This document shows, piece after piece, positions 3,450 through 31,081 of a DNA stretch of 64,000 nucleotides (its first letter is position 1; each line of letters opens with the position of its first letter). The stretch is from Trichosphaerium sp. ATCC 40318 (taxonomy: Eukaryota; Protista; Tubulinea). The notes beneath the pieces were generated by a model. It was not told the DNA's origin and searched no databases. It was given only the letters and a program-made list of their open reading frames with translations. The stretch spans positions 62,001 to 126,000 of the forward strand of contig JALMLS010000204.1 in NCBI GenBank assembly GCA_038496445.1, written 5' to 3'. Position numbers and translations under genes: made by a program.

Positions 3450-3482
3450 ATAAAAAACAATATACAATTAATACATCGATAA

Positions 3483-3614: not shown

Positions 3615-3890
3615 AGTTAGACAATAGACAGTCTAGCTATCGCATTGTATAGCTACATCTGCTGTTACAAATAAATGAAGTATTTTCATGTACAAATTAG
3701 TTTTGTTGATGCAAATACCATCGCTCGAGAGGACTGCAAATCTATAGTTATAATGGTCAGTGGCATAAATCTCTCACTGATTCGCAGCTGAATAAACTCT
3801 AATATTGCTCTTATTATCTTTTGCCAAAAGTATATATGTTTTACAACATCATCAGCAGTATTTCCTTAAGAAACAAAGCCCATTCATTAG

Positions 3891-5396: not shown

Positions 5397-5670
5397 TGTT
5401 TGAAGCGTTTGATTGCTAAAAAGACAATAGAAATCATTGTTAAGCTAGTGTCGTAGGTTGTCCTTTGTTTTCAAGCACCTAATATTCGTGACAAATGCTG
5501 TGTATTCCTGTTCCAATTATACGAGTTTATAAATTTGTTCACTAAGATAGCTTTGCATTGTTCTCTGAATGTAGCTGTAATTTAAGTCTACGTTGACTTA
5601 CAATTATGTTTATTTTTACCATATTCTACTAAGCTTACACTAACTCAGACCTTGTTTACACCTTCGAAAT

Positions 5671-6084: not shown

Positions 6085-6311
6085 CCGCTACTGTAAAAAA
6101 CCTAACATACTGAATAAATGTCTGTGACGTTTTGTTTTACCTTATCTCTGTTCGTGAACGATGCCTAACATCGTAATATTCATATTATTGGCAATGTATG
6201 CGATGTACTTACAACATTTCACTGACCGAATTTCACAAATCACGTGATAAAGAGGAAAACCGTTTACCAAAATAAACGCCAGAAAAAGCATTGCAATTGT
6301 AGTCAGTCGTT

Positions 6312-6815
6312 ATGAATGTAAAAAAAGACCTCAAGGTAGTTCCAAAGTGCTACAAGCACTTACTAGAGTTGCCTCAGGAGCTTCAGTACATGTTATATAT
6401 GTATGACACTGAAATATACCTACTTTGGCCGCTGTTATGCTTACAAACAGCAAAAACCAGTCGTTTTAATGATGATCTAGAGAAACACGGTAAATTTGTT
6501 AAATGGCATTACAATAATGTGCTTGTAAAGAGGTCAGAGTATTTTTATGTAAATGGTAAGAAGCACGGTAATTGTACAAGGTGGTGGGATGAAGGACAAG
6601 TTTTAGAAATATCGCATTTTGTAAATGATAAGAAAGATGGTGTTTGCAAGAAATGGTATGATAATGGACAGCTATGTTTATCAGCAAATTACATCGGAGG
6701 AAAACGTGATGGAGTGTGTATATGGTGGTATAGGGATGGTGTTACAATGAAGCAAATGGTGTTTTCTAATGGAGAGGAGATAAGAAACTACTTAGAACTA
6801 GACGACTATTTGTGA
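6312..6815 (+). CDS. F-box-like + MORN2 (YwqK-like) repeat protein, copy A
   Basis: LLELPQELQYML N-terminal motif; repeats YVNGKKHGNCTRWWDEG, FVNDKKDGVCKKWYDNG. Confidence 0.8.
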   Translation: MNVKKDLKVVPKCYKHLLELPQELQYMLYMYDTEIYLLWPLLCLQTAKTSRFNDDLEKHGKFVKWHYNNVLVKRSEYFYVNGKKHGNCTRWWDEGQVLEISHFVNDKKDGVCKKWYDNGQLCLSANYIGGKRDGVCIWWYRDGVTMKQMVFSNGEEIRNYLELDDYL

Positions 6816-7022
6816 GGTTAGCTATCATTGATATACCCTTGCTGTCAAGCACAACTTGTGTAAGAGTGCCCATTCACATTTTACTTTAGTTGAAGCTCAT
6901 CCACCGGTTCTTCAATAGACTAATATATTCACTTTTAATCGCAAAACAACCTATAACCGATTTACACCATTGCTTGCCTAAAGTAGTAATTTGCTATCTC
7001 CTAGTTCAATAAATTATAACAT

Positions 7023-10000: not shown

Positions 10001-10310
10001 AAATCTGCTTTTTTTGCCACCTAGAAATACCTAACCCTACGCGGAAAAACCCTAGAACGATTTGAAGGAAAACCCTATGTAACAGCGTTGCTAGTATTAA
10101 ATAAACGTACCCATAAGACAATACAGGGATGGTATCTAGATAACCAAAGCCTAGAGCATTATATGTTCCATCGCTTGCTATATCAAAAAAGGGACCTAAT
10201 TTACCCTCCACCCTTGATACTATAGAAATTTGTGCAGGGTACGAACACCCAAGGCAAGCGCAAAACATTGTAATAACAATAATTAACGGTGCTGCGTGAT
10301 ATAAAAGCAT
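7023..10310 (-). CDS. Large cell-surface membrane protein with Cys-rich (GCC2/ephrin-receptor-like) repeats, multi-exon
   Basis: Signal-peptide-like N-terminus; QCPPGTFKSKPGIDICLLCNPGTWQPNVGSSTCLPC; TM helices; ends approximate. Confidence 0.6.
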
Positions 10311-10577
10311 TCTTTTTATAACATCTGTCGTTTGTGTAGAGTTGAAGACAAAAAATGACTTTCAGCGACTTCTAACTTTACATTTAATTCTCGCGAGAAA
10401 TGACTTGATACCGAAGTTGACCGATATTGTTTTGTTGAAATTGTCACATCTTTGCACTTGAATAACCTATTTTGACATGAATACGAGTTCTGCAGCCGGA
10501 ACATTCAAGTTTTGTCCACCTTGATGAAATGTTATTTTTATGCAACAATGTTTGACAAAGTACATTACTTTTTATTT

Positions 10578-13500
10578 TTAATTCTGAGCTTTACCAATGT
10601 CCTCCATATCTACAGGTTTTGTTTGCTTCCAAAGGACATAAGATAGTCCAGGTACATTATTTACATGTGACAGATGTGGTTGTAGTTCCATACTATCATC
10701 ACTTGGGTCGTGGAGGTGGAAACCTGCCAATTCATTTTCATCCAACTTATCAACCGTATCACAAGTTGTACGATGATTATAGGAAAAAATATCTTTAAGT
10801 TCCTCTTGTGTGAACTGTTGTTTACCACAACCAGCACTACTCAGTATAGATGAACCTAAAGCCTCTTTACTAAGTTGCCTTTGATAAATCTTTTCATCAA
10901 TGGTTCCTGTTGATAGTATTCTGTACAAAAATACCTTAACGGTAATTAGTTAAAGAGTTGTACGTTCAAAAAAAACGTCACAAATGCTATGATTGATGCC
11001 GTATCCATTACCATAGATGGTAATGGACGTGGCTAGTAAAAAACAACATCAAGGGCTGCACCAGCGCCCCTAGACGTTGTATTCTTACTCCCAATCGTGT
11101 ATTGTTAAGATGAGTAGGAGTAATGGAACGCTAGAGGTTCTAACTTGCGGTAAAATCTTGTGTTGTTCCGTACTGGTTTGGTTTGTCCATCTCTCCACAC
11201 CCGTGCTTGAGCTTGTCTATCATGGACAGGGTTCCAATCAATATCGTAGAGTATCAATCTGTTTGCACCAATCAAGTTGAGACCCTAATACTTGCGTTTT
11301 AGGAGAAAAAAAAAGTGGTATTGCACAAAAGGCGTCACGTACTTGACCGCCTGCTTTTGTTGATAGAAAAAAGATCTTAAAATCTTCATTTGTATTAAAG
11401 CGTTTAACAAGTTTCTGTCTCTTTGCTTTCACTGTTGATCCATCCAACCTACAAGTAAAAGTAAGACCACGCAACAAGAAATGCAAAAAAGTTTTGAATT
11501 GAAGTTTGCTTTGTGCACGTGCCTTAGATGTCCAATATCTTCAGATTTTGTCCATTCTTGTAGTAGATCCAAAGTAGACGTGAAGTGTGATACTAAAATA
11601 TTTGTTAATGTGGACAGCACACAAGAATGTTGATTAGGTTTACCTACTACTGTCCTATCTCCAATACTTATGAAATGTTTTAATAAATGTACAAGCGCTG
11701 CCATCTTTGCTAAGGGAAAATATGAGCAGCTGAGCTTGTTCCAAATAAATTATTGCATACCAGAGTGCTCTGGATCATGACTAAGATCTTCTGGGCTGTT
11801 CTTGGATAATGCGGGGTGATTAGATATTTTCCTAAGCTCCAAAATCCCAGAAAGTGCATCACAAGTTCCTTCAACAAATAAGCAAGATAGGACTTTAAAC
11901 AAAGAAACACATACCATCTGGGTCTGATATAAAGTTTTTGTAAAGCTTTGCTTGTGGTTCTTGGCATTTTACAAATAGAACTGTTGCCACTGAAGTAGCG
12001 TTAGAATGTCAACTTAATTTTTTTGTCAAAAAAAAGGTTTTTACCTCGTGGTGGCAGAAACTCTTCCAGAGCGTTTTGAGTACGCCGTAGAATAAATTTA
12101 TCAATTGTTGTTGTAAGTTCTTTCTCTCTTTTTGCACCCAAATCACGTTGTTCCTGTGTTGCATTCGGTGCTTGACCAGCGACTAATAAAAACTTAGAAG
12201 TTGAAGAAAATGAGATTTGAGGATTTTGCAAGCGCTTCTTGTTGTGTTCTAGTTAGTTTTTTTTGAGCCATACCTATGACCTTTGAGAAAAGGTTTGTAA
12301 ATACTTCTTGGGATACGAGGATTCCAGGATTTACGATATCAACTAGAGTGAAAAACTCTTTGAGATTATTCTGGTAAGGTGTTCCAGAGAGTATAATACG
12401 ACGGTCACAGCGTAAGCTGAGTACCGCTCTTGTTGTTTTTGATTCTTTATTTTTCAATTGGTGACCCTAAACGGAAACCATAAGATGACAAAACCAACTA
12501 GGAAGAATAATTTTGATAAATGGCACTTGTCACGTGTACGAGCGCAATAATAGTTTTCACAGCTCTAGTCACTCGCATATGCAATGAAATCAAAGATAAG
12601 TGAATGATGTTTTTTTTATCGTAAAATGTTATGAACAGTTTTTACCGTAAACTGTTTTAGTAAAATAAAGTACTACAGTAGCACTACCAAAAGAAATATT
12701 GTAGGCCATTAAAAAGTTCGTTTGTTGGTCGCAGGACATAAAATACAGAATATAATGTCTCAAAAAAGAAATTAGTACCTCGTCAGCTATAATTAGTCCA
12801 ATAGGTATACTCTCTATCTGCTTCATGATGCGCAATAGGGTATCATAAGATACCTAAAAGGGGTTTAGAGCTCTACGAGCCACATGCCTTTTAGACCAAG
12901 AGATGTTCGTACAACAAGAACTGGATTTACTGATCCGTGTTTGAAGAAATCTAGACGCTGGCTCACTTCTGTCTTATTCTTTGCATTTAAAAGATTTACT
13001 GGCTGTAATCTCTCGTTTCCTAGCCATTTATTTATCTCATCACACCAATTCTACGTAGACATAAGCAAAAGATTTTTCCTTCTTTTTTCTTCTTTTTTTT
13101 CTTTTTTCGTACCTCCACTAACGAAGCTGGTGCTACAATGAGAACCTTGCGAGCTGTAGGTTGGTGTATAGGTTGTTTTAATAGCGTCCATAACAAAGCA
13201 ATTGATTGTAACGTTTTACCTATCCATAGTAAGCAATATTGTCCTCTATCAGCATTAACTGAGTTGTACCTAAACCCTTAACGATAACTATTAGAATTAA
13301 ATTGCAAGAACAATGCGTACCATTTCGTCTGCTAGAATACAACCAAATCCAGCACATTTATATCCCATAACACAGTCAAACCTATCAACGATTACAAAAG
13401 CAACCAAAAACAAAAACAACTAAGACGTACATGAACTTCACTCCCTCTCTTTGATGTGGTCTCATCTTCCTGTTAAACAATTTAAGCGCATCATAGTCAA

Positions 13501-14476
13501 TGTGTGTTCCGAAAGAGTACCTGGAGAGTAAAGGATCAACGACAATAGCCGGACATTCGTCATCACCTTTAGACAACACTAAAGCGCCTTATGTATGTTA
13601 ATACAGCCTTATGTTTACGTGAGGAACCTACCTTCAGCTTCTGGGTCGTGTCGAGGCCGCCTAACGATCTGTCTAGTTGATTACGTTAATTGTTGCTTAT
13701 GGTTTGTTGTATGTACTTCTTGACTGGTATTGATGATTTGTCTGCAAGAGGGCTCTTAAAACTAGAAAATTGTATTCTCTTTTTTTTCACTTTGCTTGTT
13801 GCTGCAGCCGGTGCTGCAACCGCCATGAATATCTGGCCAGTCTCAAAGAGTTCCTTGTCAATCTGTGATTGCATCTACGCGGGTTATACAAACGTGTAAA
13901 AGTGATATCTACCTCTATGAGTTTGCTTGAAAAGGTAAGTGTGGATTCCACAACGAGTTCTGAGAGTGTCTTTGCAGAGTAGCTGTCACACGTAAATGTC
14001 ACAAAAAAAATAGCACTTTCAGTACCTGACTGTCTTACCGATCATCTTTCCTTCCATATCCAGCAGCTCACAACGCGCTTTATAATTCTTGAGCCAGAAT
14101 CGATCAATAATAGCTGAATCCGCGTTTTGACGCGTTTACGTACCTCCGCGCACTACAAGTATGCCTATGATAAAGGTTACAGACAACGAAGTAATTATTA
14201 TTCTTTACCATCTTCCCATGACTTCTTTTTCTTCTTGAGGTGTTTTGTATACATCACAGACCAGTAAACAGCCTCAGTGGCGGCAGTTGGATCTGTACCA
14301 CCATTATTGGCTGTTAACTTGGGTGTATGCATTACTTTCGCCTTTTTCTTTGGTTGAGCGGCTCTTGGCGTTACAAATTTCCTTTTCTTGGTAACGGGCG
14401 TAGTCTTATCTGAAGTATCGCCTATTTTCCTCGGTACAACGAATTTACGCCGTGAGGGAGCCCTGGACTTTCTCAT
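10578..14476 (-). CDS. RAD54B: RAD54B/Rdh54-type SNF2 DNA translocase, multi-exon
   Basis: [71 protein letters not shown]; N-terminal [20 protein letters not shown] resembles RAD54B. Confidence 0.9.
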
Positions 14477-14602
14477 TTAGCGCTTGAAGCAGAATGAAGC
14501 GTGAGTGAAAATCAATTAAGTCAGTTACTTCAAGTCATAATAAATTCATGTTTACAAGTTTTAATTATCACGTGCTATGCTTTCGAATCATTTTTTTTGT
14601 TT

Positions 14603-15818
14603 TCAAAGGTGCGATTGTTCACTTACATCGAGCTTTACCTCACTCGTAGTACTTTCACATAGTGTACTGTCAAAGCCTTCTGTTTCAGTATTTTCGATTT
14701 CTATTTGAACACCATCACTATCTTCCTCTGGATTTTCTGCCATTTCACTTTCTACTTGTTGTTCATTTCTCTTTTTAATTAGTTAGCAACCCATTTGTGG
14801 TTGTGATTGGTTTGCTTGCCTTAAAGTCTTCTTTTGTGTCTCTATACACAAACCATACTATACCAACAAACATAACAGCAACGACAACAACCGCGATAAC
14901 AACGCTAATTACTACAATGGCTGTAGATTGTTCGTGTATTGGTGCTTTGGTAGGCGCAAAAGGGGATCTGGTAGTTTCCGTATATGGAGATGCTGGTGTC
15001 TGACGTTTGGTGTACGCCAAGATGTCTTGCTTTTCTAATTGAAAATATGAAAAAAATATTCACTGCCAACTAAGTCGATGTACCCTCCTCAGTATTAATA
15101 GGTCCATAAAATTCGCTACCCCATTCTTTTATCCATCTAATAACGTATTAGTTACTTTTATTATTTTCGGGGCGTACTTTTCGGATGCAAGTTTTTCGTT
15201 TTTATTCGGATGCTTTAACCACTCTCTACTGTCTTGTCTCGAGGACGTCAAGTATAACATACCCTTAAATAAAAACCTATAAAACGTTATAATTAATTAT
15301 CAACGCATTTAATTCGCATACCAGCCTTCACGTGGATCAACAACAAAGGTTTCCAGATGCCTAGAATCCGTTCATGATAAAATTATAAAACGAACTTACC
15401 CAATCAGGTCTTCATGAGACTGTGAGATGTGCCAAGCGGAGAAACCACCATACCTAAAGTTATTTAATGAATTACAATGAGCTTAATTTGTGTAGGTACC
15501 GTGGCATGTACGCAGAAGGGTTTGCTAAGAACAAATCCCTGTTTTCCTTTGTTTTGAACCAAAACTCGGTAGCTCTATTGAAGGATAAACTATTTACGTT
15601 ACAAACGTAGTTTACCTGTTAATACACGTGATGTTTGGCGAACCGACGCGTCCTATCCCGTTTGGCTCTAGATTGAAGTATTCTACTACATCAAAGCTAA
15701 AGCAGCGTCATTAGATACTCTATGTTTGATTTTGGTTTAAATACCCTCGGAGCGCTGGTTTACTACTATACACGATACAAAAACATGTTACAAACGCAAA
15801 AAATAATGACCAAACCAT
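14603..15818 (-). CDS. Secreted/TM-anchored YHS-domain-like protein, multi-exon
   Basis: Signal peptide MVWSLFFAFVTCFCIV; FDVVEYF, FWFKTKENRDLFLANPSAYMPR-YGGFSAW, VDPREGW, GMLYL; C-terminal TM and acidic tail. Confidence 0.65.
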
Positions 15819-16186
15819 TGCCACGCCAACACAACAAGTTATTTTTTTCGAAACTCGAACACAAATAAAATAAATAAACTATTTTCTGACAAAACACGTG
15901 GTGACATAAATCGATTTGCGTTTAATGGAACAACAAAAAAACGAACTGGATATTTTTCGTATTCTTCTAGACTCAGGTGAGCGCGTCATGACGTGGTATT
16001 TGGCGCAAACTTTTTTTTGAATAACTTGAGAAAAACGGTAATACTCTGAAGTCTGTCAGTTTCCATACACGCTAAAAGGTGGTAAAAAACCGTTGTTTTA
16101 AAGACAATAAAGTCATAATGCGTTTATTTTTTATTACAGTTCGCTGGTTTGTGTGGAAAACTTTTCGTTTTTCAATACCTTTTTTT

Positions 16187-18636
16187 TTATCCTTGCATAC
16201 CAATAACGTGCTTGATAAGCATAAATTGTACCGGGTTATTCTCGCTGTACGCTGTTAAATCACCTAGAATAAGAAGTGAGAAGATATGCTGAGATGTTAT
16301 CGTTGTGACGCACTTGAACAAACAGCGTCATCTTTGTTAACATCCATGTTGGTAAACAATACAGAAGCCTGTGCTTCGCTCAAACCTTCGAAAAGGTGTT
16401 TGAAATATACTTTATAACCTGCCTCTGAGTTGGCTTTGTTATTCTCGAATGCACTCAAAATTTGTTTGATAAACTCCTCACGTTCGTTTGTTATTTCTTT
16501 TGTGCATGTTGTAGATACATCAATGTATTTCTCGAAATCTATTTGCATCGTCAATCAAGTGTACGAAAGTATGTCCAAAAAAACAGGGAATATTTTTAAC
16601 GTACTTATGCCTTCTAGGCCTTTGCCTTGGTTTCTGAAAAAAGATTCGACTTCCTTTGTTTTTGGTACACCCAATAATTCCGCAAACTCTGTAACATTAA
16701 GCTCGGCATCGTAATCCTTGTCGGCCGTTGCAAATTGCCTTGAAAGTAAAGTTAATAAGAGTGCAATGTTCTTTAATTTTAGTACGCACTTCAATAGCTT
16801 CTTGACCTTGCGTACACGAATACCGTAATCCTTTGTTATTTGTTCCATGTAAAATCCAGGTACAGACTCTTCAATACCGTATTTGAGCAAGTCTCCATAC
16901 AAAAGTGCATCCTCTATTCAAAAAATTAGAAACAGCCACGCTTTTTCAAAATGACTGAACTGTATGCTGATTTGCCATTGCAAAGTTAGCTACACTCATG
17001 TAATAAACATTTCGGCAACTAACATTTGATTGCTAGGTTACTGTAATATAAAAAAAAAACAAAACCGAGCGTTTTATTTGCTTACCCATTGAATAATTTG
17101 TGAGCTCTCTTCCAAGCTCCTTTGCCATAAGGTTGCGAACATTAGATGCATAAAGTTTAGCATCCTTTTTCTCTTCTTCGTTTGGTATGTACGGATCAAG
17201 AATATTGACTTGCATGTAGTTTATATATTCGCCCATCATTGTACCAGCAATCTGAGGAAAGGTGCGGTCACATGTCCATGAAATATCCCCATACTTGAAT
17301 GGGTAATTCACGCACACAGGTTGGACAGGTAGACCTGATTAACGACGTCAAAAAAAATCAACATTGCTGTGAGAATACATACCAGGTATGAACGCGCCAA
17401 GTTTAAATTTCAGCAATGTACTACCATTTGTAGTTGTTCCTTCTACAATCAACAAGTTAGTTGAGTAACTTTAAGGGATATCGACAAACCTGGGAACATA
17501 AAAAATCCTGGTACTTTAGGGTTGCTCATGGCGAGCTCTGCTCTTGCTTTGATTCTTTGTAGCGCTTTCTAAACACAAAAATGATTAACACAAAGAAAAT
17601 GTCTCTTAATTTCTACCTTCTTCGAGTCCTTGCTTGTACGTTCCAATAGAACTGCCTGAGATACTTTGAGCATAGTGCCAATTACAGGGTACTGTAAATT
17701 TTCCTTTGCTGATACACTAGCTGCAGGATAAAATAACCTAAGAACCCATAAATAAATATGACAATGTTTTGGTCTTTTTTATTGATACTAGCTAAATAAG
17801 AAACGTACCAAAACATGAGGAGTGCGTCTACAAGGGATGTATGATTGGCAACAATTATAGGAGCCTAAGCAAAAAGTGAGTTCAAGCACTAATTTTTAAC
17901 AGGAGTGTTACTTCAATTTTTCCAAAAACAAAAAACTTACAGCTTTGCTTGGCGATCTTTTGCCTTTTACATCAATCCAGAAGAAGCCCCACATGAATAG
18001 TACAAGACGTGCATGAAAAGTAACGATTTTTGTTAAAACTTTACGCCACGTGGCTAATGGTGCATCTTTGGAAGGATCTATACCAATACTGGCAATCTAT
18101 AGTATTGGTTTAGAACAGTATGAAGATTAACAGAAGAAAACGCTTCCGCAAATGGCGAAATGTCGGATATTTTGATAGACCGCCCTTTGCAAGTCAAAAG
18201 TCTTGGATTTGTAGTTTTAACGCGTACCCATGCGTATACAGAAGCGGATGTAAATATCATCACGCATAGTACGAAACGAACGGGAACAAGTAGTCCATAG
18301 CCAATTATAGTCTGGGGGTGTCAGTACGTACGTTTTTGAACAGATTTGTACCTTTATGAGAGAAAAGAGGAAAAATTGCTTCTGAGGGGGTTTGTACACG
18401 AAAGGACTGTCCTAGGATGCGTTAGACATTGTTATTGCGCTGTAAAATCCTACTTCTTTTTTATAGCCTCTTGTTCCCTTGAACTTGGGCGTGCGCGTCT
18501 TGCGCTTGTTGCTCTTGGCTCCGCCACTCATTAAAGTGAACCACACAACACCACACGACATAAATGCAACTAAGAGAGGCACTGCAACGCCAGGTAGATT
18601 GAAATCAGGAATAAACGCTGCGTTCAACTCGTTCAT
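16187..18636 (-). CDS. LPCAT: Lysophosphatidylcholine acyltransferase (LPCAT1/2-like) with EF-hands, multi-exon
   Basis: IIVANHTSLVDA, FPEGTTTNG, FKLGAFIPGLPVQPV acyltransferase motifs; C-terminal EF-hand-like DKDYDAELNVTEF. Confidence 0.85.
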
Positions 18637-18916
18637 GCCGCCGTAGTTATCTTAAGTCTTTTTGGCAGTCTGTTGACTAATCAAGCGTTGCGTATGTAGC
18701 ACTATCACTTGAGTGATGAATTAAGTGAAAGGTAGGTAAACAAGTGAGTTTTGAGCCACTTCACTGATGAAAAAACAATTAACAACTTTAACGGAAATCG
18801 CCACTATGTTGATCCTTTTGTATCAACTTGCCAGAGTATGCATACATACATAGTGTAGTTGCCATGTTAAGGTCTTATTGAACACTCTTAAGTACGCCAT
18901 TGTAGCGTAATAAAAC

Positions 18917-19620
18917 ATGATACACAGTATACTGGTGGTAAATTCAGAAGGTGGTATACTATTTTCGAAGTACTACGATGATACTATGGACGAGGAAGAT
19001 ATTTTTGAGTCACAACAAACGCTATACAAGCTCACAAGCGCTGAATGGCCATCAGCGAAGAATGGTGTTCAAGTAGCCGCTTACGAGTGAGAACGCGAAA
19101 ACGCAAGTTTAAACGGCTAATTTCCCTTCGTAGCAAATACTACATTGTATATACTGCAGTAGACGAGTTATACGTGTTTATTCAGGGCAGCGACGTAGAT
19201 GACGAGCTAGGATGTACGAACACGCTTTCAATACACTGTTAGCGTATACTGCGCTACTTTCGGTTTTATTCATCAATTCTGACGCACAGTAGTAGCTGGC
19301 TTACTAGAGGATGTGGTAGGCATACTAAAGGCAATGGCAAAGAGAGGACCAGTACGAATACTTATATTTCTGTAGTTTCGTTGCATAATCAGTTCTCTAG
19401 GTAACTGAGGTGGCTGTTATGGATGAATACACAAAACTATGCTTATGTTTAGATCAAATGGTGTCAAATGGCATTGCAAACCAAAGTAACAGGTACATAC
19501 AGTACAGTGTTTTGTCGCATGGTATTTACACGTGCAAGGGATTACATTGAGTCATTGGTTGAGATGCGTCCAAGAACGCAAAAGGAAGGAGGTTCATTGT
19601 TACCACATCTTAAAATATGA
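18917..19620 (+). CDS. TSPOON: TSET/TPLATE complex sigma-like subunit (TSPOON/LOLITA), multi-exon
   Basis: MIHSILVVNSEGGILFSKYY...YIVYTAVDELYVFIQGSDVDDELG...VTEVAVMDEYTKLCLCLDQMVSNG; the VYT..GxDxxDEL and LCLD motifs match LOLITA/TSPOON-type longin subunits. Confidence 0.75.
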
Positions 19621-19884
19621 GGCAAATCTATGAGCACGTGCCAGTGTTTGTTCACAACCTCAGCAGACGAAAAATACTGACAATAGGTATTTAATGTTTG
19701 TAATTGTATTTTGTGTGGGTGTGGCGGTGTCTTACATGTGCAATAAATTGATAGTGTAATTTTAAAAAATGCTTGCAATTTTTTTTTGGTTTTTTTTGTG
19801 TTTATTGTTTTTGTTTGTAATCGTGTATTTGTTATAAAATCGTGCTGTAGCAGTAGGGATCAGAGCGTCTAAAACATAACAAGC

Positions 19885-19938
19885 GCGCCGGTGGTGTAGG
19901 GGTTATTAATGTCGTTTCCGTGGATGTGCGCCCGGTAC
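19885..19938 (+). pseudogene. T-arm-deleted tRNA-Gly-like relic (TCC at anticodon position)
   Basis: GCGCCGG TGGTGTAGGGGTTATTA ATGTCG TTTCCGT GGATG TGCGC CCGGTAC aligns with the neighbouring tRNA-Gly but lacks the T arm/B box. Confidence 0.7.
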
Positions 19939-20708
19939 CACACGACTCACTGCGACTGACTTAACGACCAGTAAAGCGCCCTTGTGTGATAACGTTTACT
20001 GGTCGTAAGCAACGTTTTGGCTGTCTGAACCACGGTACGTCATTTTTTGGGTGCGCAGTAATTATTTAACGGGTTTGAGGGTTGTTTACGCCACTTTAAG
20101 CGCCTGTTTGTTACAGTGCCGTTTATTATGTCGTACCTCCCTTGCTACGCCGTTTGTTTTAAATTACGCAGCAATTTTTAAACGCCGTTTTGCTAACTGC
20201 CTTGTAGAACACGCTATTCGTGCCTAATTCACACCACGCAGCATTACGCGTTACTCAATAGGTACTACAAAAATATTTTTTTTCACAAGTTTTTTTATTT
20301 TTGCAGCGCAAAACGGCCGGTTCAGAGTAATGCGCTCTAGCCACTTCCCTACGCAGTGCGCACCTGCTACCGGAATATAGCCCAAGCAAAAAACGAAATC
20401 TTCTCCCATTTTTCATCTTCTCCAAAGCGCTCAAATCACTGTAAAAACCACAACTACACGTATTCTGAATCGCGCCAATTATTTAAACCCATTTTTACAC
20501 CCATTTTTTAGGAAAACGCGTAACTGGCCAACAACTTGTGTACTCACGCCCTGTTAACACCGTACGGGTCAGTGGAGCAAAGATATGACATGGTACGCCA
20601 CCTTAGCTATGTGTGTTTCATCTGAAGCTAGCAGTAACGCTCCGCCTAAACGTATAGTTGAAAGTAGTGTACTGAGTCATATCCTTCTTGTAATCTAATA
20701 AATCATCT

Positions 20709-20779
20709 GCGCTGGTGGTGTAGGGGTATCATACTACCTTGCCATGGTAGTGACCCGGGTTCAAATCCCGGCCGGTGCA
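20709..20779 (+). tRNA. tRNA-Gly(GCC)
   Basis: 71-nt cloverleaf: acceptor GCGCTGG/CCGGTGC, anticodon arm CTACC-TTGCCAT-GGTAG, T arm CCGGG-TTCAAAT-CCCGG, followed by TTTTT at 20786. Confidence 0.9.
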
Positions 20780-20864
20780 AATATCTTTTTACAACCATTT
20801 AAGTTTACTTAACATTGTTTTTCTGGGCCAACATAAATGCGACATATTCCTGCGGAGGTCTGGT

Positions 20865-20960
20865 GCACCGGGCTCATATCCACGGAAACAACAATGCTTT
20901 GTAGGGGTATCATATGTCCTTGCCATGGATGTGACCCGGGTTCAAATCCCGGCCGGTGCA
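20865..20960 (+). pseudogene. Second tRNA-Gly(GCC) copy whose 5' end is replaced by an inverted T-armless relic
   Basis: 20900-20960 matches the first tRNA except in the anticodon stem (TGTCC/GGATG); 20864-20899 is the reverse complement of a relic similar to 19905-19938. Confidence 0.7.
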
Positions 20961-21109
20961 ACTCAACTTTTGGCCCTTCTAAGGCCATCCTTTTTGCCAT
21001 GAACATGCTCACCATGTAGTTTACATCTGTGGCAAGGCGCACAATGTTTAGTTTTACATTTTGGAAATGGTGGCATTGTGCTAGACACCCACCAAAAAGT
21101 GCCATTTTT

Positions 21110-21170
21110 CTAGGGTTAGGGTTATAAACATCAACCCTAACCCTAACCCTATGTTCTTGAACCCTAATCC
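21110..21170. repeat. Interstitial telomere-type repeats, G-strand then C-strand; mirrored at ~24160-24218
   Basis: TAGGGTTAGGGTTA-TAAACATC-AACCCTAACCCTAACCCTA. Confidence 0.75.
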
Positions 21171-21418
21171 ATATTGGGTTTTCTTTTTGAATGTTAATTA
21201 TTAATTTCCATACTAAGCACAACATTCATTATCATTGACTGGTTTAAAATCACACAATGCAACTATGCCTTTATTTTGATTAACATTCATTGGTATACTT
21301 TGTTTGAAGTTGTTAGGTTTGCCAAATTGTGTTTATTGCAAGGCTTGTTGCTATGTATTGAATAAGCTTCAAAACAACACTTACAAGTTGGTTATAAATA
21401 TGAATGTAAAAATCTAAG

Positions 21419-23909
21419 GCCATTTAATAGACAACATAGTTTGTTGTAGCATCAGAATTTGCTTTAAGAAATATTTTATAAAAAGATAATGACTATGATG
21501 TATTCAAACAATTTTTTGGTCTGCAATTGTAGTTTTATTGTGCAAGACTACAACTGGCGTTGGCATTTGAGCAAATGTCTACTAAATGCTTGTATAAATG
21601 CCTGTTTTTAAGGCCAAATGCCTGTTAGATGCTTGAATCCAGTACACAACTATTTCAGGCATAAACAAGGCATTTAACCCTCCAAATGCTGGACATAAAT
21701 CAAGCATTATTCAAATATAATGCAGGCATAAAATAGGCATTCATAAGGCATCAAACTTGTATTTATTTGTGCTACAACAATGTACAATTACAAAAAAAAG
21801 TTTCTAAGTATTGTTATAATTTTTATCGCCTTTGTATTACATGTAATTTATCTTTGCCATGTTCATAGGTGTACTTGGATGCTGTGGTTCTAATGAGCTA
21901 AGTTTCGTTAGAATTGATGAAATACTAAGAGCGCTACATGCTGTTTAATAGAGGATCACCATTTTCATTCAGTGTTTTTTTTGCTGTTGATGTATTGGAG
22001 ATTATACTTTTTTTATACCTGCCTTAAAAGTATACAAACATGAACAATCAAACATCTTTTCATTGAGTAAAAAGGGTTTTGGCATTGTCTACATATGCCA
22101 AGGGTAGCATGTTTTGAAATACTTGATTAATGTCATGCCAGTAAAATGCTGGCATTTTATAAGCAGTTGTTACTTGTGTTCCATTAACAATAGTAAAATA
22201 GAAATGGGAATTTTTAAGTAATCCACCCTGTTTTTCTATGGGAAAAGTAGACGGAAAAACTCTTCCTTCATTCCCATTGAATTTATATGAAATTCCATAA
22301 GTATTACCCATAGAATTCTTAGAGTATTACTTTTGGAATTGCGTATGTATTTTATATAGAATTCTCTATGTATTCTTTATAGCATTTCTTAATGTATTTT
22401 TTGTAGATTTCAATAAAAAATACTTTATAAATTAACAAAATATTATTCGATACTTTGGTTCAGATTTAACGCAAAGTCATTTTATTTATTGATCATTACA
22501 AATACAAACATCCTAAATAACACGTACAAGTTAAATACATCGTGTCTTCATAAACGAAAGAAGTAATTTGATTGCATTTGGTTTTGAGAGCCTGAACAAT
22601 AATTAATGTGTTTGTAAATGCTAAATTAAGAACATGTAGGGTTTTTTGATAAATTAAGTGGAAATAAGCTTTAAAAACAACGTACTTGGAATTAATGCTT
22701 TAAATACATTCTTTAATGGTGTAATAAGGCTGTTGCAATGCTTTAATCATCCTAAAACAGATAAGTAAGAGATATTTATGTTTAAGTGATTTTCCAAACC
22801 ACCTAAAATGCGTTCTCCATTACTTTTTGGATTAATGCACTTTAACCTGTACCATTGGTTTTTTCACCTTTAATAATAGCATGTGGATATTGTTTGTTAG
22901 AAAAACCTATGTACCTAAGGTGTTGATGGTTTTTTGCAAATATAAAACTAACCCTAACCCTAACTTAATTTGTACTTTCATAAACCTCAACCCTAGCCCT
23001 AACCCTAACCCTAACTAAATTAGTACATTAATTGGTGGATTTTGTACAATAATTCTGAAAATTCCGTATTTAAGGGAATATTATGGTAATTCTATCAAAA
23101 ATCCTGCCATAAAAAAAAATAAAAATAAGAATTCTTCACAAATTACCTTAAAAATCCCTAAAACAAAGGAATTTAGTGGGATTTATATCCAAAATCCCGT
23201 TTTCATTTTACCACTGAAATGCCTATTTTATGCTTCATAATGCCTGATTTTAACCAAATGCCAGCATTTGATAGGTAATGCCAACTTCAGTTTCAGCCCT
23301 GCATCAGTGTTTTTGAATAAAACAAAGATTTCAGGCTTTGTGTTCAAGCAATCAAGCCTAAAATACTATCAAACATCTTTAATTAAGGGAATGCTAAATA
23401 TGTTAATATTTTTGCAATGAATTGATAAAAGTGGCTACAAAAGCCTAAACAATACTCAAATCAAAAAAAACAATTGTGTTAATCTCAGCCCAACAAACTA
23501 TCCTGTTAATCAAATGAAGTATCAATAGGTTTGCTTCCAACACTCAAACCTACATTAAAAAGGCTGATTCAATTACAAAATGTCTAAGAGAATGTCCATC
23601 ACAGACAACATCTATCTTAAAATTGTGGCAACTGTGATAAAGCATTAGCTGCTGCTTCAATGGTATGCTCGACTACATTGTTTTCAATAGATGTTGTAGA
23701 TTCTTGATATGTATAGTTCAAAGTTTCTTTGTTGGGTTTTTTATTCAGAGTTAACAAGTTGCAAGTTACAAATGAGCAAGCTCAGAATTGTAAGCTTTGC
23801 TATTACACAATTATCTTGCATGTGCATAGCAACTTTAGCTTTTTTGACATAGTAATGTACATAAAATGTTTTAGCAGTATTACTTGAAAGTGTATTGAAA
23901 ATAACAGCT
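21419..23909. other. Unique central core between the inverted arms: AT-rich, CpG-depleted, no credible gene
   Basis: Very few CpG, abundant TG/CA (ATGCC/GGCAT motifs), degenerate internal inverted repeats, CCCTAA runs. Confidence 0.8.
22948..23015. repeat. Interstitial (CCCTAA)n runs in the core
   Basis: CTAACCCTAACCCTAAC and AACCCTAGCCCTAACCCTAACCCTAAC. Confidence 0.75.
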
Positions 23910-24367
23910 CTTAGATTTTTACATTCATATTTATAACCAACTTGTAAGTGTTGTTTTGAAGCTTATTCAATACATAGCAACAAGCCTTGCAATAAACACA
24001 ATTTGGCAAACCTAACAACTTCAAACAAAGTATACCAATGAATGTTAATCAAAATAAAGGCATAGTTGCATTGTGTGATTTTAAACCAGTCAATGATAAT
24101 GAATGTTGTGCTTAGTATGGAAATTAATAATTAACATTCAAAAAGAAAACCCAATATGGATTAGGGTTCAAGAACATAGGGTTAGGGTTAGGGTTGATGT
24201 TTATAACCCTAACCCTAGAAAAATGGCACTTTTTGGTGGGTGTCTAGCACAATGCCACCATTTCCAAAATGTAAAACTAAACATTGTGCGCCTTGCCACA
24301 GATGTAAACTACATGGTGAGCATGTTCATGGCAAAAAGGATGGCCTTAGAAGGGCCAAAAGTTGAGT

Positions 24368-24438
24368 TGCACCGGCCGGGATTTGAACCCGGGTCACATC
24401 CATGGCAAGGTAGTATGATACCCCTACACCACCAGCGC
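24368..24438 (-). tRNA. Chimeric tRNA-Gly(GCC), probably pseudo (mismatched anticodon stem)
   Basis: 5' half of the 20709 copy joined to the 3' half of the 20900 copy; stem CTACC/GGATG has T.T and A.A mismatches. Confidence 0.7.
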
Positions 24439-25209
24439 AGATGATTTATTAGATTACAAGAAGGATATGACTCAGTACACTACTTTCAACTATACGTTTA
24501 GGCGGAGCGTTACTGCTAGCTTCAGATGAAACACACATAGCTAAGGTGGCGTACCATGTCATATCTTTGCTCCACTGACCCGTACGGTGTTAACAGGGCG
24601 TGAGTACACAAGTTGTTGGCCAGTTACGCGTTTTCCTAAAAAATGGGTGTAAAAATGGGTTTAAATAATTGGCGCGATTCAGAATACGTGTAGTTGTGGT
24701 TTTTACAGTGATTTGAGCGCTTTGGAGAAGATGAAAAATGGGAGAAGATTTCGTTTTTTGCTTGGGCTATATTCCGGTAGCAGGTGCGCACTGCGTAGGG
24801 AAGTGGCTAGAGCGCATTACTCTGAACCGGCCGTTTTGCGCTGCAAAAATAAAAAAAACTTGTGAAAAAAAATATTTTTGTAGTACCTATTGAGTAACGC
24901 GTAATGCTGCGTGGTGTGAATTAGGCACGAATAGCGTGTTCTACAAGGCAGTTAGCAAAACGGCGTTTAAAAATTGCTGCGTAATTTAAAACAAACGGCG
25001 TAGCAAGGGAGGTACGACATAATAAACGGCACTGTAACAAACAGGCGCTTAAAGTGGCGTAAACAACCCTCAAACCCGTTAAATAATTACTGCGCACCCA
25101 AAAAATGACGTACCGTGGTTCAGACAGCCAAAACGTTGCTTACGACCAGTAAACGTTATCACACAAGGGCGCTTTACTGGTCGTTAAGTCAGTCGCAGTG
25201 AGTCGTGTG

Positions 25210-25263
25210 GTACCGGGCGCACATCCACGGAAACGACATTAATAACCCCTACACCACCGGCGC
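25210..25263 (-). pseudogene. T-arm-deleted tRNA-Gly-like relic (mirror of 19885-19938)
   Basis: Exact reverse complement within the right arm. Confidence 0.7.
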
Positions 25264-25388
25264 GCTTGTTATGTTTTAGACGCTCTGATCCCTACTGCTA
25301 CAGCACGATTTTATAACAAATACACGATTACAAACAAAAACAATAAACACAAAAAAAACCAAAAAAAAATTGCAAGCATTTTTTAAAA

Positions 25389-28300
25389 TTACACTATCAA
25401 TTTATTGCACATGTAAGACACCGCCACACCCACACAAAATACAATTACAAACATTAAATACCTATTGTCAGTATTTTTCGTCTTTTCTAACACTGTTGGC
25501 GGTGCTGTACTGTTGGAATTACTTTTGGCCAACGCGTTTTCCAACTTTTCTTTTTCATTGATAGCGTTTTCTGCTTTTGCAGAAGCGGCTTTCTCAGCTT
25601 GCTTCAAATCATAGATTTGTTGTTCCAGTGTAAGTATTTGCTCGTTGAATGTGTGCTCTCGTATCAGTGCCTCGTTTAGTGCCTTTTCAACCTCTGCAAA
25701 CTCGTCTGCACTAACCATCGGTATTGAAGATTCTGGTTCTGTAGCAGGTACGCTAGGTTCTGATACAGGACTGGTCCCAAGTGTAATATGCTCTGTGGTA
25801 GTTTGCACAGACTCCAAGCGCCCATTATCAACGATAGTAGGTTTACTGACATCATGCTAAACAAATGTTACAAACAAGAAGGATAGGAAATTTTGTACCT
25901 CAATAGCTTTGTCGGCTTCAATGCTATCAACCGCTACAGGTTCTGTACTATCTTCTGGTTCTAGGGTATCCACTGACGTTTCTTCTGGTTCTTCAGATGG
26001 ATCGATATCCTCACTACCTTCTTGTGTTTCTTCATGTTGATTGGCTTCACTGCTTTCAGCTTCTCTATCTTCCAATTCTGCGTTTTCTGTATTTGAAGTT
26101 TCAACGGCGATTTGATGTTCATTATCTGCACTGTCAGCTTTGGCTTCTTTAACAATGTTGTCTTTAGCATTGGCATCATTAGATTCTCCTTTAATGTCCT
26201 CTTCAGTCTCTTTGGATACTTCAACACCAGGTGAACTTGGTGGCTCTTCTATGACGTCTGAATTCAATCTGTGGCTAGCAACTAAAGCCATTCTGCTCCG
26301 TGGTGTTGGTGGTTGCCGTTTGGGTTTTGGTACTGTCTCAATATCACGGCTTAACTCAAGCAGTTGTATTAAATTCTCTGTCTCTTCTTCTGAAAGCGGT
26401 GGTGTCACAACACCAGTTTGAAAACGTGGTGAGAGCGGTGAAGTATCTCCTGAAGCAGCTTCTACTAATGGAACTGATGTACGCAAGCCTATCTCGAGCC
26501 TTTTCGCAGGTTTTTCGTTTTCGTTCTTGCCAGTATGCCAAACAGCCTCTGTAGATAACTGTTCGCTTTCGTGTGAGGATACTTCAATTTCTGGTATGGT
26601 TGTTGGCTCTTCTTCTGTTTCTTCTTCTTTGTCTTCTGTCGTTAGTATCTTATCTGCCTTCTCTCGATCTTCTGCAGTGGTTTCTTCTTCTTCTTCATCT
26701 TCCATTGGGTGCACTGGAGTGTCTGTTTGTGCTTTCTTTTCGTTTCGTGTCGCGGCTGCTACAACTTCTGCAATCTCTTCAGGGGTGCGACTGTACGATA
26801 GCGATGTCACACGTGGTCTTCTTTGCATGCGACTACTTGACATCTCAGATACTTCTGACTCTTCTTCAAATTCTAGTTTATTCCTTCTTTCTGTCTCTGC
26901 ACGATATCTTTCACTTCCAGCCAAAGATATTGTATTACTCTTTGTGAAAGCACGCCTATTTAATGAAATAGTTGCAATGCTCAAAGATCTGTTTGTTTGT
27001 GCTCTCTTCGATGCCGTTTCTGTTCTTCCAAACTTGGTTGACATGACTCGTAATTTCTTATCAACAAACAGGTCACGAGCATGCATGATAAGCTCACGGA
27101 CAACCTCACATTGAGTGTCAACTACCTCAAAGCTATCTTGACCAAAAAAGGATCCTTGGAATACACGTGCAAGATTGCCGATGTCCATTTTGTTTTTGTT
27201 GGAGTGAGCTGCAATGTCCGTGAAAAATGCCATCAAATGACAAAGTACTTTAAAATTTGCACGTGGAACACGAGCAATTAAACCCTTGTACTTTGTAATC
27301 CGCACACCAACCTCACGTATATCTACAAAAACATAAGTAAACAATTACACTTGCTCTAACGTACTTATTACGTCAAGGAAAAGAGGGCGAAGGCGAACTG
27401 TCAACAAAGGCTCAGGAAGTGTTCCTAAAAAATGATGTCAGAACCAAATAAGGGCAACCTTTTTTATGGCAGTACGCACTTAAAAACAGTGTAAGAAGTC
27501 CACACCTAACATAAGGTTAGAATAACAAAAATGTTAAAAATAATACAAATGTACCAGTCGTATATTTCCTGTATGGCACCCTCTACCAAGTCAAGTTGTT
27601 TGGCCTCAACTAAATCTTTTGCTTTTTCGATTTGTAGCTTGAAAAAAAACGATATTAGTCGCCACCACGTGCTCATGCATGTAGATTGGTACCTTTCTAC
27701 CTGGTACGCGAAATATTCCCTCTTCATCTATCCCTTTTTCACGTATTTTATCGGTACATAATTGAAGGACAAGAGGAATGCCATTAGGTTGCTCTGTTAA
27801 ACGAAAAGATTAGAGGCAAATTACACCCGAGTAAAATGATTAAAAAAACTGCAGTTAACACGTGTATTTACTAACCTGGATGCATAATAGATAGCTGTGT
27901 AGGATCTATACCAAACTGAGGGTACTCTGGCCCTTTTTTGCACTTTTTCCTGGCGATTGGTCGTTTTAATAAAAATACCACACTAAAACATTATAAACGT
28001 ACTCTTTTCGCGGTGTAGAAACGATTTAACAGCACGATTCTTTGTATGGCTTTTCTTTTTAGTACTTTTTTGGCTACCTCTTCCCAAACAATAAGCACAT
28101 CTATTTTTACGCTATATTTATCCGTACCGAGACGATTTAGTGGATCCTAGGGACTTTTCTTCTGTTCTTTTCTCCTCTGATTTTTCTTGAGTTTTTGGTA
28201 CAGCGTGAACCGTTTCAACGCGGCTACCGTTCCTACTATGCTTCTTTTTACCTAAATATGGTCACGAATAAGATCACTATCGATAAAAAGCCTTTTTTAA

Positions 28301-29374: not shown

Positions 29375-30805
29375 TTACGACATGCCTTTCCAGTTTTTGT
29401 GGTGTAAGACAATTTTACAATTTGTATTAGCATCTTCGAGGGCTTTTATACCTTCTGTTGTAACTGCAGTATTCTCAAGGTTGATGTTATGAACTCCTGT
29501 TAATCCTTTGATACCTTTATCTGTCACTTGTCTGCAACCAGTAAGGTTAAGAGTGTGTACATCTTTTAATGCTGTAAGCCCATCATCTGTAACATTAGTA
29601 AAACTAAGTGAAATAGTAGGAACGTCTTTTAATGCTTTAATGCCCTCATTAGTAACTTTGTGACAGCTGGAAAGGCTAATTTTATCAACACCTTTTAGTG
29701 CCTTTACACCTTCATCTGTGATTGAAGTGCTGTCAAGGAGAATAGTATGAACTCCATGTAATGCTTTGAGACCTTCGTCTGTCACTCTTGTACAAGTAAG
29801 GTTGATTGCATGAACATCTTTAAGCGCTTTAACACCTTCATCTGTGACTCTTGTACAACTAAGGTCAATTGTATGAACATCTTTTAGAACTTTAACACCT
29901 TCATCTGTAACAGAAGTTCCATAAAGGCAAATGCTATGAACGTCTTGCAATGCTTTGATACCTTCATCAGTAACTCGTTTACATCTAGTAATATCTATAG
30001 TATGAACACCTTTTAGTGCTTTGATACATTCATCAGTGACTTGTTCACAGTCACTAAGGTTAATAGTATGCACATCTTTTAATGCTTTGATGTATTCAAT
30101 GTTAACAGATGGACACTCAGATAAATCAATTGTATGAACACCTGTAATTGCTTTCATATCATCTTGGGTGATATCAAGCCTGCCAGATACATTTATTTTG
30201 CGGCATCCATCAAGTAGAGAGATCAATGTCTGTGTGTGATCCAGGGTGATCATAGTGTTGTTTTTGATACCATTGTACTCTCTAATCCTCAAAATATCTT
30301 TTACTGAAGAGAGACACACCTCCTCATATCCAACAATATCATGAATGATATCGGCCATCATACGACATGACTGAGCAACAGCGAACCTTGAAATTTCACA
30401 TGTTTGATTTAAAATACTTGAAATTATTTTCTCTGGCAGTCTAAGAATATTTGGTTCGTTGTATGCTGTCTTTGGTGCTCTATATAATTGTGGTAAGTAA
30501 TAACAATGTAACAAAACAAAGTGTTTTAGAAAAACGTACTGTCTTTTTTGTTTGCGATTTGGCAAAGCGATGCTTGAAGGAGAACGTCTCGAACTCTCGT
30601 TTGATTCTTCAGCGATCATATCTGTTGGTTTCAGAATAAAATCATCAAGTTGTTGTACAAGACGCGTATTTGAGAGATCTAGAATCCTTTTCACGTGTTT
30701 TACGAATAATTGAGGTTGTTCAACAACAAGGTTATTGTAAGCTTCTTTGTGGTTCTCACGATAGTATTTAATTGCTTGTTCAATTGAAACGCCACAGAAA
30801 TTCAT
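29375..30805 (-). CDS. F-box-like + short LRR protein, copy B (in-frame 60-nt intron, 30480-30539)
   Basis: Paralog of copy A (MNFCGVSIEQAIKYYR; SRFAVAQSCRMMADIIHD); 11 LRRs; GTACGT...TAG intron at the same position and phase as in copy A. Confidence 0.85.
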   Translation of the reverse strand: MNFCGVSIEQAIKYYRENHKEAYNNLVVEQPQLFVKHVKRILDLSNTRLVQQLDDFILKPTDMIAEESNESSRRSPSSIALPNRKQKRQYVFLKHFVLLHCYYLPQLYRAPKTAYNEPNILRLPEKIISSILNQTCEISRFAVAQSCRMMADIIHDIVGYEEVCLSSVKDILRIREYNGIKNNTMITLDHTQTLISLLDGCRKINVSGRLDITQDDMKAITGVHTIDLSECPSVNIEYIKALKDVHTINLSDCEQVTDECIKALKGVHTIDITRCKRVTDEGIKALQDVHSICLYGTSVTDEGVKVLKDVHTIDLSCTRVTDEGVKALKDVHAINLTCTRVTDEGLKALHGVHTILLDSTSITDEGVKALKGVDKISLSSCHKVTNEGIKALKDVPTISLSFTNVTDDGLTALKDVHTLNLTGCRQVTDKGIKGLTGVHNINLENTAVTTEGIKALEDANTNCKIVLHHKNWKGMS

Positions 30806-31081
30806 GATTTGAGTGCAGCAGGAGCACTGATGGAATTTATGATATAAATTTGTCTTTTCTATCTTTTAAAAATCACGTGGTCAAACAGTTTAGCACTACT
30901 TTTTACTTTTAGTTTTTATTCTTTGCTCGGTAGCTACTGTTTTTATGCCATGTGATTTATTCTTATGAACGGGAAGGATCCATCATAAAGTCAAGTCTTA
31001 GGAGGGGGATATTAAGTCTTAGGATCTCCGCAGTTCAGTCGGTTTATTAGTACACTAAAATAAGCTCCGCAATACCATTGA

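Follow-up and report, generated by a model that had tools for sequence, protein, structure and literature searches.

The inverted repeat at 19665–25483 of the 64-kb window (the whole stretch of Trichosphaerium DNA that was analysed) is best explained, with a probability of about 0.72, as a tRNA-Gly cassette of 1.75 kb that has recently undergone inverted segmental duplication or, alternatively, as a pair of arms whose identity is maintained by gene conversion. The structure is without a dedicated function. It is an ordinary structural variant, and the idea that it marks a centromere, which was put forward in an earlier sequence-only reading, is attractive but unsupported.

The Arms of the Inverted Repeat

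Both arms are present in the assembly, the left at 19665–21418 (+ strand, 1,754 nt) and the right at 23910–25483 (− strand, 1,574 nt, having lost 181 nt). A gapped alignment of the two revealed no substitutions in approximately 1,573 aligned nucleotides, which is far beyond chance. The arms differ only in the length of a T-run at 20289 (an indel of 1 nt) and in a segment of 181 nt that the right arm lacks (20737–20917), and the two near-identical inverted arms claimed from the sequence are thus confirmed. At all four arm ends, the identity drops abruptly to background. The absence of divergence and the sharp edges fit a simple recent inverted duplication, the outcome that the sequence-only reading had named as the refutation of its own proposal. 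Outside the tRNA sequences, the arms consist of host DNA that occurs at a single locus in the genome, and they lack transposon termini or target duplications. No microhomology or scar of a copying mechanism could be read at the arm junctions in the gapped alignment. Pfam searches on the open reading frames of the arms and core returned no family, and an Rfam search of the arms (E ≤ 1) found the tRNAs and one chance-level miRNA match, with no other RNA gene.

It is unlikely that only one cassette is real and that the second, inverted arm was made by the assembler. A copied consensus would also yield perfect identity between the arms, and an assembly tangle exists at another tRNA inverted repeat, where contigs C27 and C36 overlap. 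However, the arms differ by a clean recombinational deletion of 181 nt in addition to the indel, and the four junctions open into different unique sequence in the middle of a 432-kb contig. Moreover, a non-palindromic spacer of 2.5 kb is unlike a fold-back read artefact, and assemblers usually collapse repeats and seldom invent them. Exact-product look-ups of an arm-specific open reading frame and of a junction-spanning exon, in a collection that may withhold records of this genome, gave no match, with no independent assembly on record. On the internal consistency of these features, both arms probably exist in the DNA of the organism.

Flanking Genes and the Direction of Copying

The neighbouring genes are convergent, and exons in the window are short. 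The left gene, a probable adaptor-small-chain/zeta-COP-like gene, lies on the + strand and ends at 19620, and the right gene, which encodes a RhoGAP/coiled-coil protein, lies on the − strand and ends at 25389. The left arm begins 45 nt past the stop of the left gene, and on the other side, the final 95 nt of coding sequence in the right gene lie within the right arm. Of the earlier statement that the structure lies between two convergent genes, the convergence therefore stands, but the locus is not wholly intergenic, as the right arm holds those 95 nt of coding sequence. The overlap (25389–25483, −) comprises the last 31 codons and the stop of the right gene, which specify a hydrophobic, tail-anchor-like end. 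An orphan copy of the 31 codons is found at 19665–19759 (+), preceded by a stop and in a different frame from the left gene.

The right-hand gene extends into the right arm, which can therefore be taken as the original locus. This points to an inverted duplication from right to left, either recent or with arms held identical by gene conversion. A search of the genome itself found no paralogue supporting the tail-anchor exon, the second match (query residues 110–142) being the orphan copy. As the 31-codon reading has no confirming paralogue, the argument for the direction of copying is one of parsimony. The left arm is thus the derived copy by position, yet it retains the ancestral arrangement of two tRNA sequences.

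tRNA-Gly Sequences in the Arms

The left arm carries a full-length tRNA-Gly(GCC) isodecoder at 20708–20780 (+, 58.7 bits), in which every change in the anticodon stem relative to the canonical gene is compensated. No other intact copy of this isodecoder variant was found. Downstream, a 5'-truncated canonical tRNA-Gly(GCC) lies at 20900–20961 (+, 24.5 bits, model positions 10–63), identical to the tRNA-Gly genes of contigs C27 and C36, 3' trailer included. The truncated copy is abutted by an inverted tRNA-like fragment (20838–20899, −), and the left-only segment (20737–20917, +) is bounded by direct tRNA repeats of 62 nt. The right arm has a single chimeric tRNA-Gly(GCC) at 24366–24439 (−, 47.7 bits), of which the 5' part corresponds to the isodecoder and the 3' part to the canonical copy. 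It is an exact recombinant of the two left-arm copies, joined where they share 11 identical nucleotides. The middle of its anticodon stem is broken by two mismatches, and the tRNA is probably impaired. A tRNA-Gly in each arm, directed at the core, had been noted before, and the sequences at 20708–20780 (+) and 24366–24439 (−) bear this out. A decayed tRNA-Gly-like fragment is also present in the CpG-rich distal part of the left arm (19885–19940, +), with its mirror at about 25212–25272.

The Core and Its Transposons

The core has a GC content of 0.28–0.32 compared with 0.375 and is the lowest-GC stretch of the 64-kb window, so that its description as AT-rich was correct. The accompanying description as unique was not, since the core holds a multi-copy element within an older repeat family. 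A young non-autonomous DNA transposon with terminal inverted repeats (TIRs) occupies 22187–23216 (+), approximately 1,030 bp or 41% of the core. It has imperfect TIRs of about 27 nt, a 2-bp target duplication (AA), termini CAGTAG...CCACTG and internal CCCTAA tracts, and it contains no long or transposase open reading frame. At least 148 candidate copies were counted across the genome, and in the copy of the core, 22 of 1,032 positions deviate from the family consensus. With its TIRs, its target duplication and its many near-identical copies, the insert resembles MITE-like elements; however, classic MITEs are shorter than 1,030 bp, and the internal CCCTAA tracts set the insert apart. A preference of this element for tRNA genes was rejected, as a tRNA lies within about 1.5 kb of 0 of 29 other copies.

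The element interrupts an older, decayed repeat that spans at least 21788–22186 and 23217–23301 and is colinear with four other loci at 70–78% identity. The left part of the core (21419–22186) is AT-rich, with a CpG observed/expected ratio of 0.21 and many GGCATT/AATGCC motifs. The right part (23217–23909) has a ratio of 0.06, and the old repeat extends over its first 85 nt. An older inverted symmetry within the core was considered and rejected, as the best local alignment covers a motif of 25 nt (z = 3.5 relative to shuffled sequence).

Other Inverted tRNA Pairs in the Genome

The pattern recurs at other tRNA genes. Apart from the present locus, no fewer than six pairs of identical tRNA genes were found to be inverted. 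One lies on C27, and the others, on C104, C389, C12, C291 and C318, came from a sample of 63 scored tRNA candidates. In the assembly of 642 contigs, tRNA-bearing inverted repeats thus occur on seven contigs or more, their spacers measuring 0.5–11 kb. The majority of the sampled inverted pairs are convergent. Arms were measured for the C27 pair, and the other pairs are defined by their coordinates and identical scores. The tRNA-Gly repeat of C27 has one substitution in about 983 nt and a spacer of 8.9 kb, which contains housekeeping genes and is normal in CpG. This spacer was found in both orientations in the overlapping contigs C27 and C36, which suggests that such repeats do flip. That two independent repeats are nearly without divergence could reflect concerted evolution instead of recency.

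CpG Loss Between the tRNA Genes

CpGs have been lost all the way from the 3' end of one tRNA to that of the other. In this inner domain (20962–24365), the CpG ratio is 0.06–0.21 and TpG/CpA are in excess, and the core is the lowest-CpG stretch of the window. The domain includes the proximal left arm (20962–21418, +, ratio 0.07), which has a palindromic TTAGGG/CCCTAA tract at 21110–21151, and the proximal right arm (23910–24365, −), with the mirror tract at 24177–24218. One TTAGGG-like tract matches an internal tract of the young element over 28 nt. A relation of the tracts to telomeres was discarded, as the assembly contains no (CCCTAA)6 array and the likeness is one of resemblance only.

Among copies of the TIR element, CpG sites mutate at 0.13 per site per copy, compared with 0.008–0.011 at other C/G positions. 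This approximately 13-fold faster decay implies a targeted CpG methylation, and C5-methyltransferase-like sequences are present in the genome. The transposon DNA in the core is probably CpG-methylated as well, judging from its CpG decay. The edge of the depleted domain is unusually sharp: on either side, the 3' end of the tRNA is the very point at which the CpG ratio falls from 1.2–1.6 to 0–0.2. This step is not predicted by a purely neutral account. It may, however, be the edge of the old transposon.

The step also raises the idea of a selected chromatin domain, in which tRNA genes (TFIIIC/Pol III type) would act as barriers that confine CpG methylation or heterochromatin, and in which the duplication would have added a shield for the left gene. 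In S. pombe, such a barrier role of tRNA genes is established at cen1. The position of the step, the methylation-type decay of transposons in this genome and the mostly convergent orientation of the sampled tRNA pairs are in line with this idea, and it would be of wider interest if convergent tRNA pairs were selected chromatin boundaries. It is nevertheless improbable. The proximal arms are identical, and the CpG depletion therefore predates the duplication; the relic earlier abutted the left gene without an intervening tRNA. In addition, the step has the simpler reading given above, the C27 pair encloses normal-CpG, gene-bearing DNA, and the tRNA of the right arm is damaged.

A Proposed History of the Locus

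The history that we infer, including its copying mechanism, methylation, gene conversion and flipping, would begin with a single cassette between the convergent genes. This cassette would have comprised the 3' end of the right gene, approximately 1 kb of CpG-rich DNA, the tRNA-Gly isodecoder and the truncated canonical tRNA-Gly. Next to it would have been what was left of an old CpG-methylated transposon, later interrupted by insertion of the young 1-kb TIR element. The cassette would then have been copied in inverted orientation to the other side of this relic, 45 nt beyond the stop of the left gene, likely through replication template switching or break repair. Afterwards, the right arm would have lost its 181 nt via recombination between the tandem tRNA repeats, which would have left the chimeric, probably impaired tRNA. 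In 992 nt, the transposon copy of the core carries 6 non-CpG changes of its own, compared with none in the arms, so that the arms are either much younger than the TIR insertion or have been homogenised. With 1.6 kb of identity, the arms should exchange sequence and the core should occasionally flip. Flipping of the core by recombination between the arms is plausible, as a passive property of the repeat.

Hairpin RNA, Centromere and Switch

A source of hairpin RNA, in which read-through from a gene would yield a transcript with a 1.6-kb stem and thereby direct RNAi against the relic or tune the right gene, is very unlikely. The convergent genes end within the arms or no more than 45 nt from them, and if transcribed, a perfect inverted repeat of 1.6 kb with a 2.5-kb loop would fold. 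However, each arm contains T-runs that are Pol III terminators, each gene probably carries a poly(A) site of its own, and no sign of selection for structure was seen.

The centromere proposal deserves a closer comparison. The centromere of S. pombe has a central core between imr inverted repeats, with tRNA genes as heterochromatin barriers. Those of K. phaffii and C. tropicalis are kb-scale inverted repeats with a short unique middle, which occur once per chromosome and are the sole gene-free sites; the K. phaffii type requires no sequence common to the chromosomes, and both orientations of its middle have been reported. The present locus resembles that of S. pombe in its tRNA-bearing inverted arms, which enclose a distinct core that is the AT-richest stretch of the window, and in its sharp, chromatin-type CpG boundary at tRNA genes. 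It resembles those of the two yeasts in its kb-scale repeats and short middle, and on the K. phaffii model, a lack of sequence shared between chromosomes would be no objection.

However, the locus is 3–10 times smaller than that of S. pombe, lacks outer dg/dh-type repeats, and has arms that touch ordinary, expressed-looking genes, one of them covering a coding end. A long-standing gene-free domain with outer heterochromatic repeats of the S. pombe type was not found. The core is only 2.5 kb of transposon debris, 1 kb of which is a young insertion. Rather than being specific to centromeres and present once per chromosome, the architecture is common and varied on the contigs surveyed and is not bound to gene-free DNA, with one spacer bearing genes and another of 0.5 kb. 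The arms look evolutionarily “days-old”, whereas a centromere should be long-standing. A small regional centromere modelled on those of S. pombe, K. phaffii or C. tropicalis, in which CenH3 would sit on the AT-rich core, is hence a highly improbable reading, and the recurrent repeats, the gene-bearing spacer, the transposon core and the arms overlapping genes do not bear it out. The same low standing applies to an amoebozoan mini-centromere, evolved in convergence with those of fission yeast and Komagataella, whose tRNA-bearing arms would shield a CpG-methylated core seeded by transposons. Among amoebozoan centromeres, those known best consist of large DIRS-1 clusters (PMC2665215).

The long identical inverted arms around a spacer also suggest a foldback-type (long-TIR) transposon or a programmed invertible switch, but this is the least probable reading. 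No recombinase or Pfam-recognisable gene lies in core or arms, and the core has no promoter-gene pair whose orientation could matter. The arms include sequence of a host gene and lack target duplications; like the non-transposon part of the core, they are single-copy, and no second copy of the entire unit was found.

Comparison with Known Systems

Flip-flop inversion between large inverted repeats is known from plastid genomes and the yeast 2-micron plasmid. As in those systems, long identical arms would permit gene conversion and inversion of the spacer, and the sister locus on C27 and C36 is seen in both orientations. In contrast to them, the present locus has no dedicated recombinase, and its orientation is of no functional consequence.

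A closer parallel to the duplicated cassette, with its same-anticodon tRNA genes in near-identical inverted flanks, comes from another amoeba. PMC8163159 describes paired or tripled same-anticodon tRNA genes in Dictyostelium discoideum, which were copied locally, flanks included, at numerous genomic sites. The likeness drawn here concerns anticodon and local duplication; the sampled Trichosphaerium pairs are mostly inverted and convergent, with arms of 1–1.75 kb, and one member has been damaged by recombination. The locus thus offers a dated example of how amoeba tRNA cassettes may spread as inverted copies, after which a recombinational deletion generates a chimeric tRNA.

Arms and tRNA genes of the inverted repeat

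The locus appears to be a recent or homogenised inverted duplication, in which copies of a tRNA-Gly cassette lie on either side of a probably methylated transposon relic. The window was drawn from a 432-kb contig (C30:62001-126000) of an assembly of 70.3 Mb in 642 contigs. A repeat finder run on the window returned three collinear inverted blocks between 19665-21418 (left arm, plus strand) and 23910-25483 (right arm, minus strand), and these merge into a single arm pair under gapped alignment. No substitution was found over approximately 1,573 aligned nt. The sole differences are a 1-nt indel, located in a T-run at 20289, and the absence from the right arm of a 181-nt segment (20737-20917). 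At each of the four arm ends, the similarity drops to background over the space of a few bases. The near-identical arms described in the sequence-only reading are thus borne out. The inward-pointing tRNA-Gly described for each arm was likewise confirmed, as ARAGORN and Infernal placed a tRNA-Gly(GCC) at 20708-20780 (+) and another at 24366-24439 (-).

In this genome, the canonical form of tRNA-Gly(GCC) was seen on two other contigs, C27 and C36. The first left-arm gene (copy 1, 20708-20780) is a full-length isodecoder, in whose anticodon stem three pairs are unlike those of the canonical gene. Each of these changes is compensated, which indicates that copy 1 has been under selection. Copy 2 (20900-20961) is the canonical tRNA-Gly minus its first ~10 nt and adjoins a short tRNA-like fragment in inverted orientation. 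The tRNA of the right arm matches copy 1 exactly as far as the anticodon loop and copy 2 exactly thereafter, which leaves two central mismatches in its anticodon stem; its Infernal score is 47.7 bits versus 58.7 bits for copy 1. This recombinant structure points to a loss of the 181 nt from the right arm via recombination between two 62-nt direct repeats, which would have taken place after or during the duplication. The older arrangement thus seems to be retained in the left arm, although the left arm is probably the copy (see below). Decayed tRNA-Gly-like fragments were also observed at 19885-19940 and at 20838-20899, the latter in inverted orientation and joined directly to the truncated tRNA. 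The tRNA cluster may thus have undergone small rearrangements more than once.

A young transposon inside an older repeat

The core (21419-23909) is the stretch with the lowest GC and the lowest CpG of the 64-kb window. Its AT-richness, as first described, was borne out (GC of 0.28-0.32 versus 0.375 window-wide). Its supposed uniqueness was not, as 22187-23216 is multi-copy and the neighbouring DNA is colinear with four other loci. A search of the amoeba's own genome gave at least 148 candidate places matching core positions 769-1799 (window 22187-23216), and the 40 places that were scored are 96-98% identical. In a comparison of 29 copies, the element was found to be ~1,030 bp long, starting with CAGTAGTAAAAT and ending with ATTTTACCACTG. 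It has imperfect terminal inverted repeats (TIRs) of ~27 nt, is bordered by 2-bp target duplications (AA at the core copy) and contains no open stretch longer than 73 codons. Together with the near identity of the copies, these features identify it as a young non-autonomous DNA transposon. Targeting of tRNA genes by the element was ruled out, since no tRNA lies within ~1.5 kb of any of the 29 other copies. Internal CCCTAA tracts are present in this family, and contig C501 carries two copies head to tail, the second of which lacks its first three bases at the junction.

When the young element was removed in silico, its flanks (at least 21788-22186 and 23217-23301) were colinear with the four other loci at 70-78% identity and with unchanged spacing. 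The element thus landed in a repeat that is older and decayed. The core shows no earlier layer of inverted symmetry.

CpG decay and probable methylation

With the young element excluded, the CpG observed/expected ratio is 0.06-0.21 across 20962-24365, that is, from one tRNA 3' end to the other. TpG/CpA is in excess over this domain and GpC is not depleted. The ratio in the distal arms is 1.2-1.6, and the step down coincides with the tRNA genes; this sharp boundary is one of two features that merit a further look. The 29 copies of the young element were also compared with their consensus. Its 40 CpG positions carry C>T or G>A changes at 0.13 per site per copy, versus 0.008-0.011 for other C and G, a ~13-fold faster rate. 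Such an excess would imply that this amoeba methylates its transposons at CpG sites. Exons resembling C5-methyltransferases, which may be either DNMT1/5-like or Dnmt2-like, occur at C7:645.5-646.7 kb and C59:71.5 kb. The inner domain 20962-24365 is best read as a transposon relic that was probably methylated for a long time. Since the CpG-poor proximal parts are identical in both arms, the decay predates the duplication.

Age of the arms and direction of copying

The core copy of the young element shows 12 non-CpG differences from the consensus in 992 nt, six of them private. Arms of the same age as this insertion would be expected to show ~18 differences; none was seen. This suggests that gene conversion has kept the arms identical, or else that they are much younger than the insertion. 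In another tRNA-Gly repeat, on C27, only one substitution was counted over ~983 nt, which makes concerted evolution a serious alternative to a recent origin.

The direction of copying is indicated by the flanking genes. The right-hand gene, with a RhoGAP domain upstream followed by a coiled-coil exon, crosses the arm boundary on the minus strand, and its last 31 codons, which lie in the right arm, encode a hydrophobic terminus resembling a tail anchor. An orphan copy of the same 31 codons lies in the left arm, preceded by a stop codon. It begins 45 nt past the stop of the left gene, which is probably adaptor-small-chain/zeta-COP-like, and is in a different frame from it. The gene end in the right arm and the orphan in the left arm make right-to-left copying the simplest history: the right-hand cassette would have been copied in inverted orientation into the DNA separating the left gene from the relic, possibly by template switching or break repair.

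Recurrence in the genome

The C27 repeat (arms 3245-4227 and 13159-14148) carries the canonical tRNA-Gly(GCC). Its 8.9-kb spacer is normal in GC and CpG and encodes a saccharopine dehydrogenase and a 2OG-Fe(II) oxygenase. Rfam was also used to search the genome for tRNAs; the 63 candidates that were scored, out of ~3,600, include inverted pairs of identical score at C104:117898-118521 (0.5 kb apart), C389:16209-21713 (5.4 kb), C12:217785-220204 (2.3 kb), C291:19757-31408 (11.4 kb, two tRNAs per arm) and C318:12187-16870 (4.4 kb). Four of the five are convergent, the C318 pair being divergent, and this preference is the other feature worth pursuing. Only two direct pairs of identical score (C81 and C87) were found among the same 63. 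This genome thus carries inverted tRNA cassettes repeatedly, with no tie to gene-free AT-rich DNA. The tRNA-Gly inverted duplication is a fresh case of an already known amoebozoan tRNA gene arrangement.

The starts of C27 and C36 (positions 1-20000 of each) overlap over ~14 kb at 94-99% identity. On C27, flank A is followed by arm, spacer, arm and flank B, in that order; C36, when reverse-complemented, runs from flank A and arm into the same spacer in the opposite orientation. A 1,976-nt transposon with 48-nt TIRs interrupts the C36 arm (C36:8932-10907) and is missing from C27; it belongs to a second family of DNA transposons, and its insertion is polymorphic. The two contigs, both of which end near the repeat, look like two haplotypes or paralogues differing by an arm-to-arm inversion, or else the opposite orientations reflect an assembly tangle at the repeat. 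At the window locus the core may also flip; the assembly holds no alternative contig for this repeat. A look-up for an independent assembly gave none. That the window's repeat is itself an assembly artefact is unlikely: the indel that sets the arms apart is clean and recombinational, all four junctions are distinct and the locus lies mid-contig, an internal consistency that supports its physical existence.

The centromere reading

The proposal of a small regional centromere of the inverted-repeat type has only the shape of the locus in its favour. Komagataella phaffii-type centromeres require no sequence in common, so this reading keeps a very slight probability. It is opposed by the common and varied occurrence of tRNA inverted repeats in this genome, by a tiny core of which 41% is a young insertion, and by arms that touch or overlap genes, lack outer repeats and bear no sign of age. 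Moreover, among amoebozoans, the centromeres that have been studied best consist of large DIRS-1 clusters (PMC2665215).

A run of six CCCTAA units is absent from all 642 contigs; either the assembly lacks the telomeres or their repeat unit is other than TTAGGG. Self-comparison of the window also revealed an LRR/F-box gene (29418-30815) with an inverted paralogue ~21 kb off (51652-52899), at 73-94% nucleotide identity.
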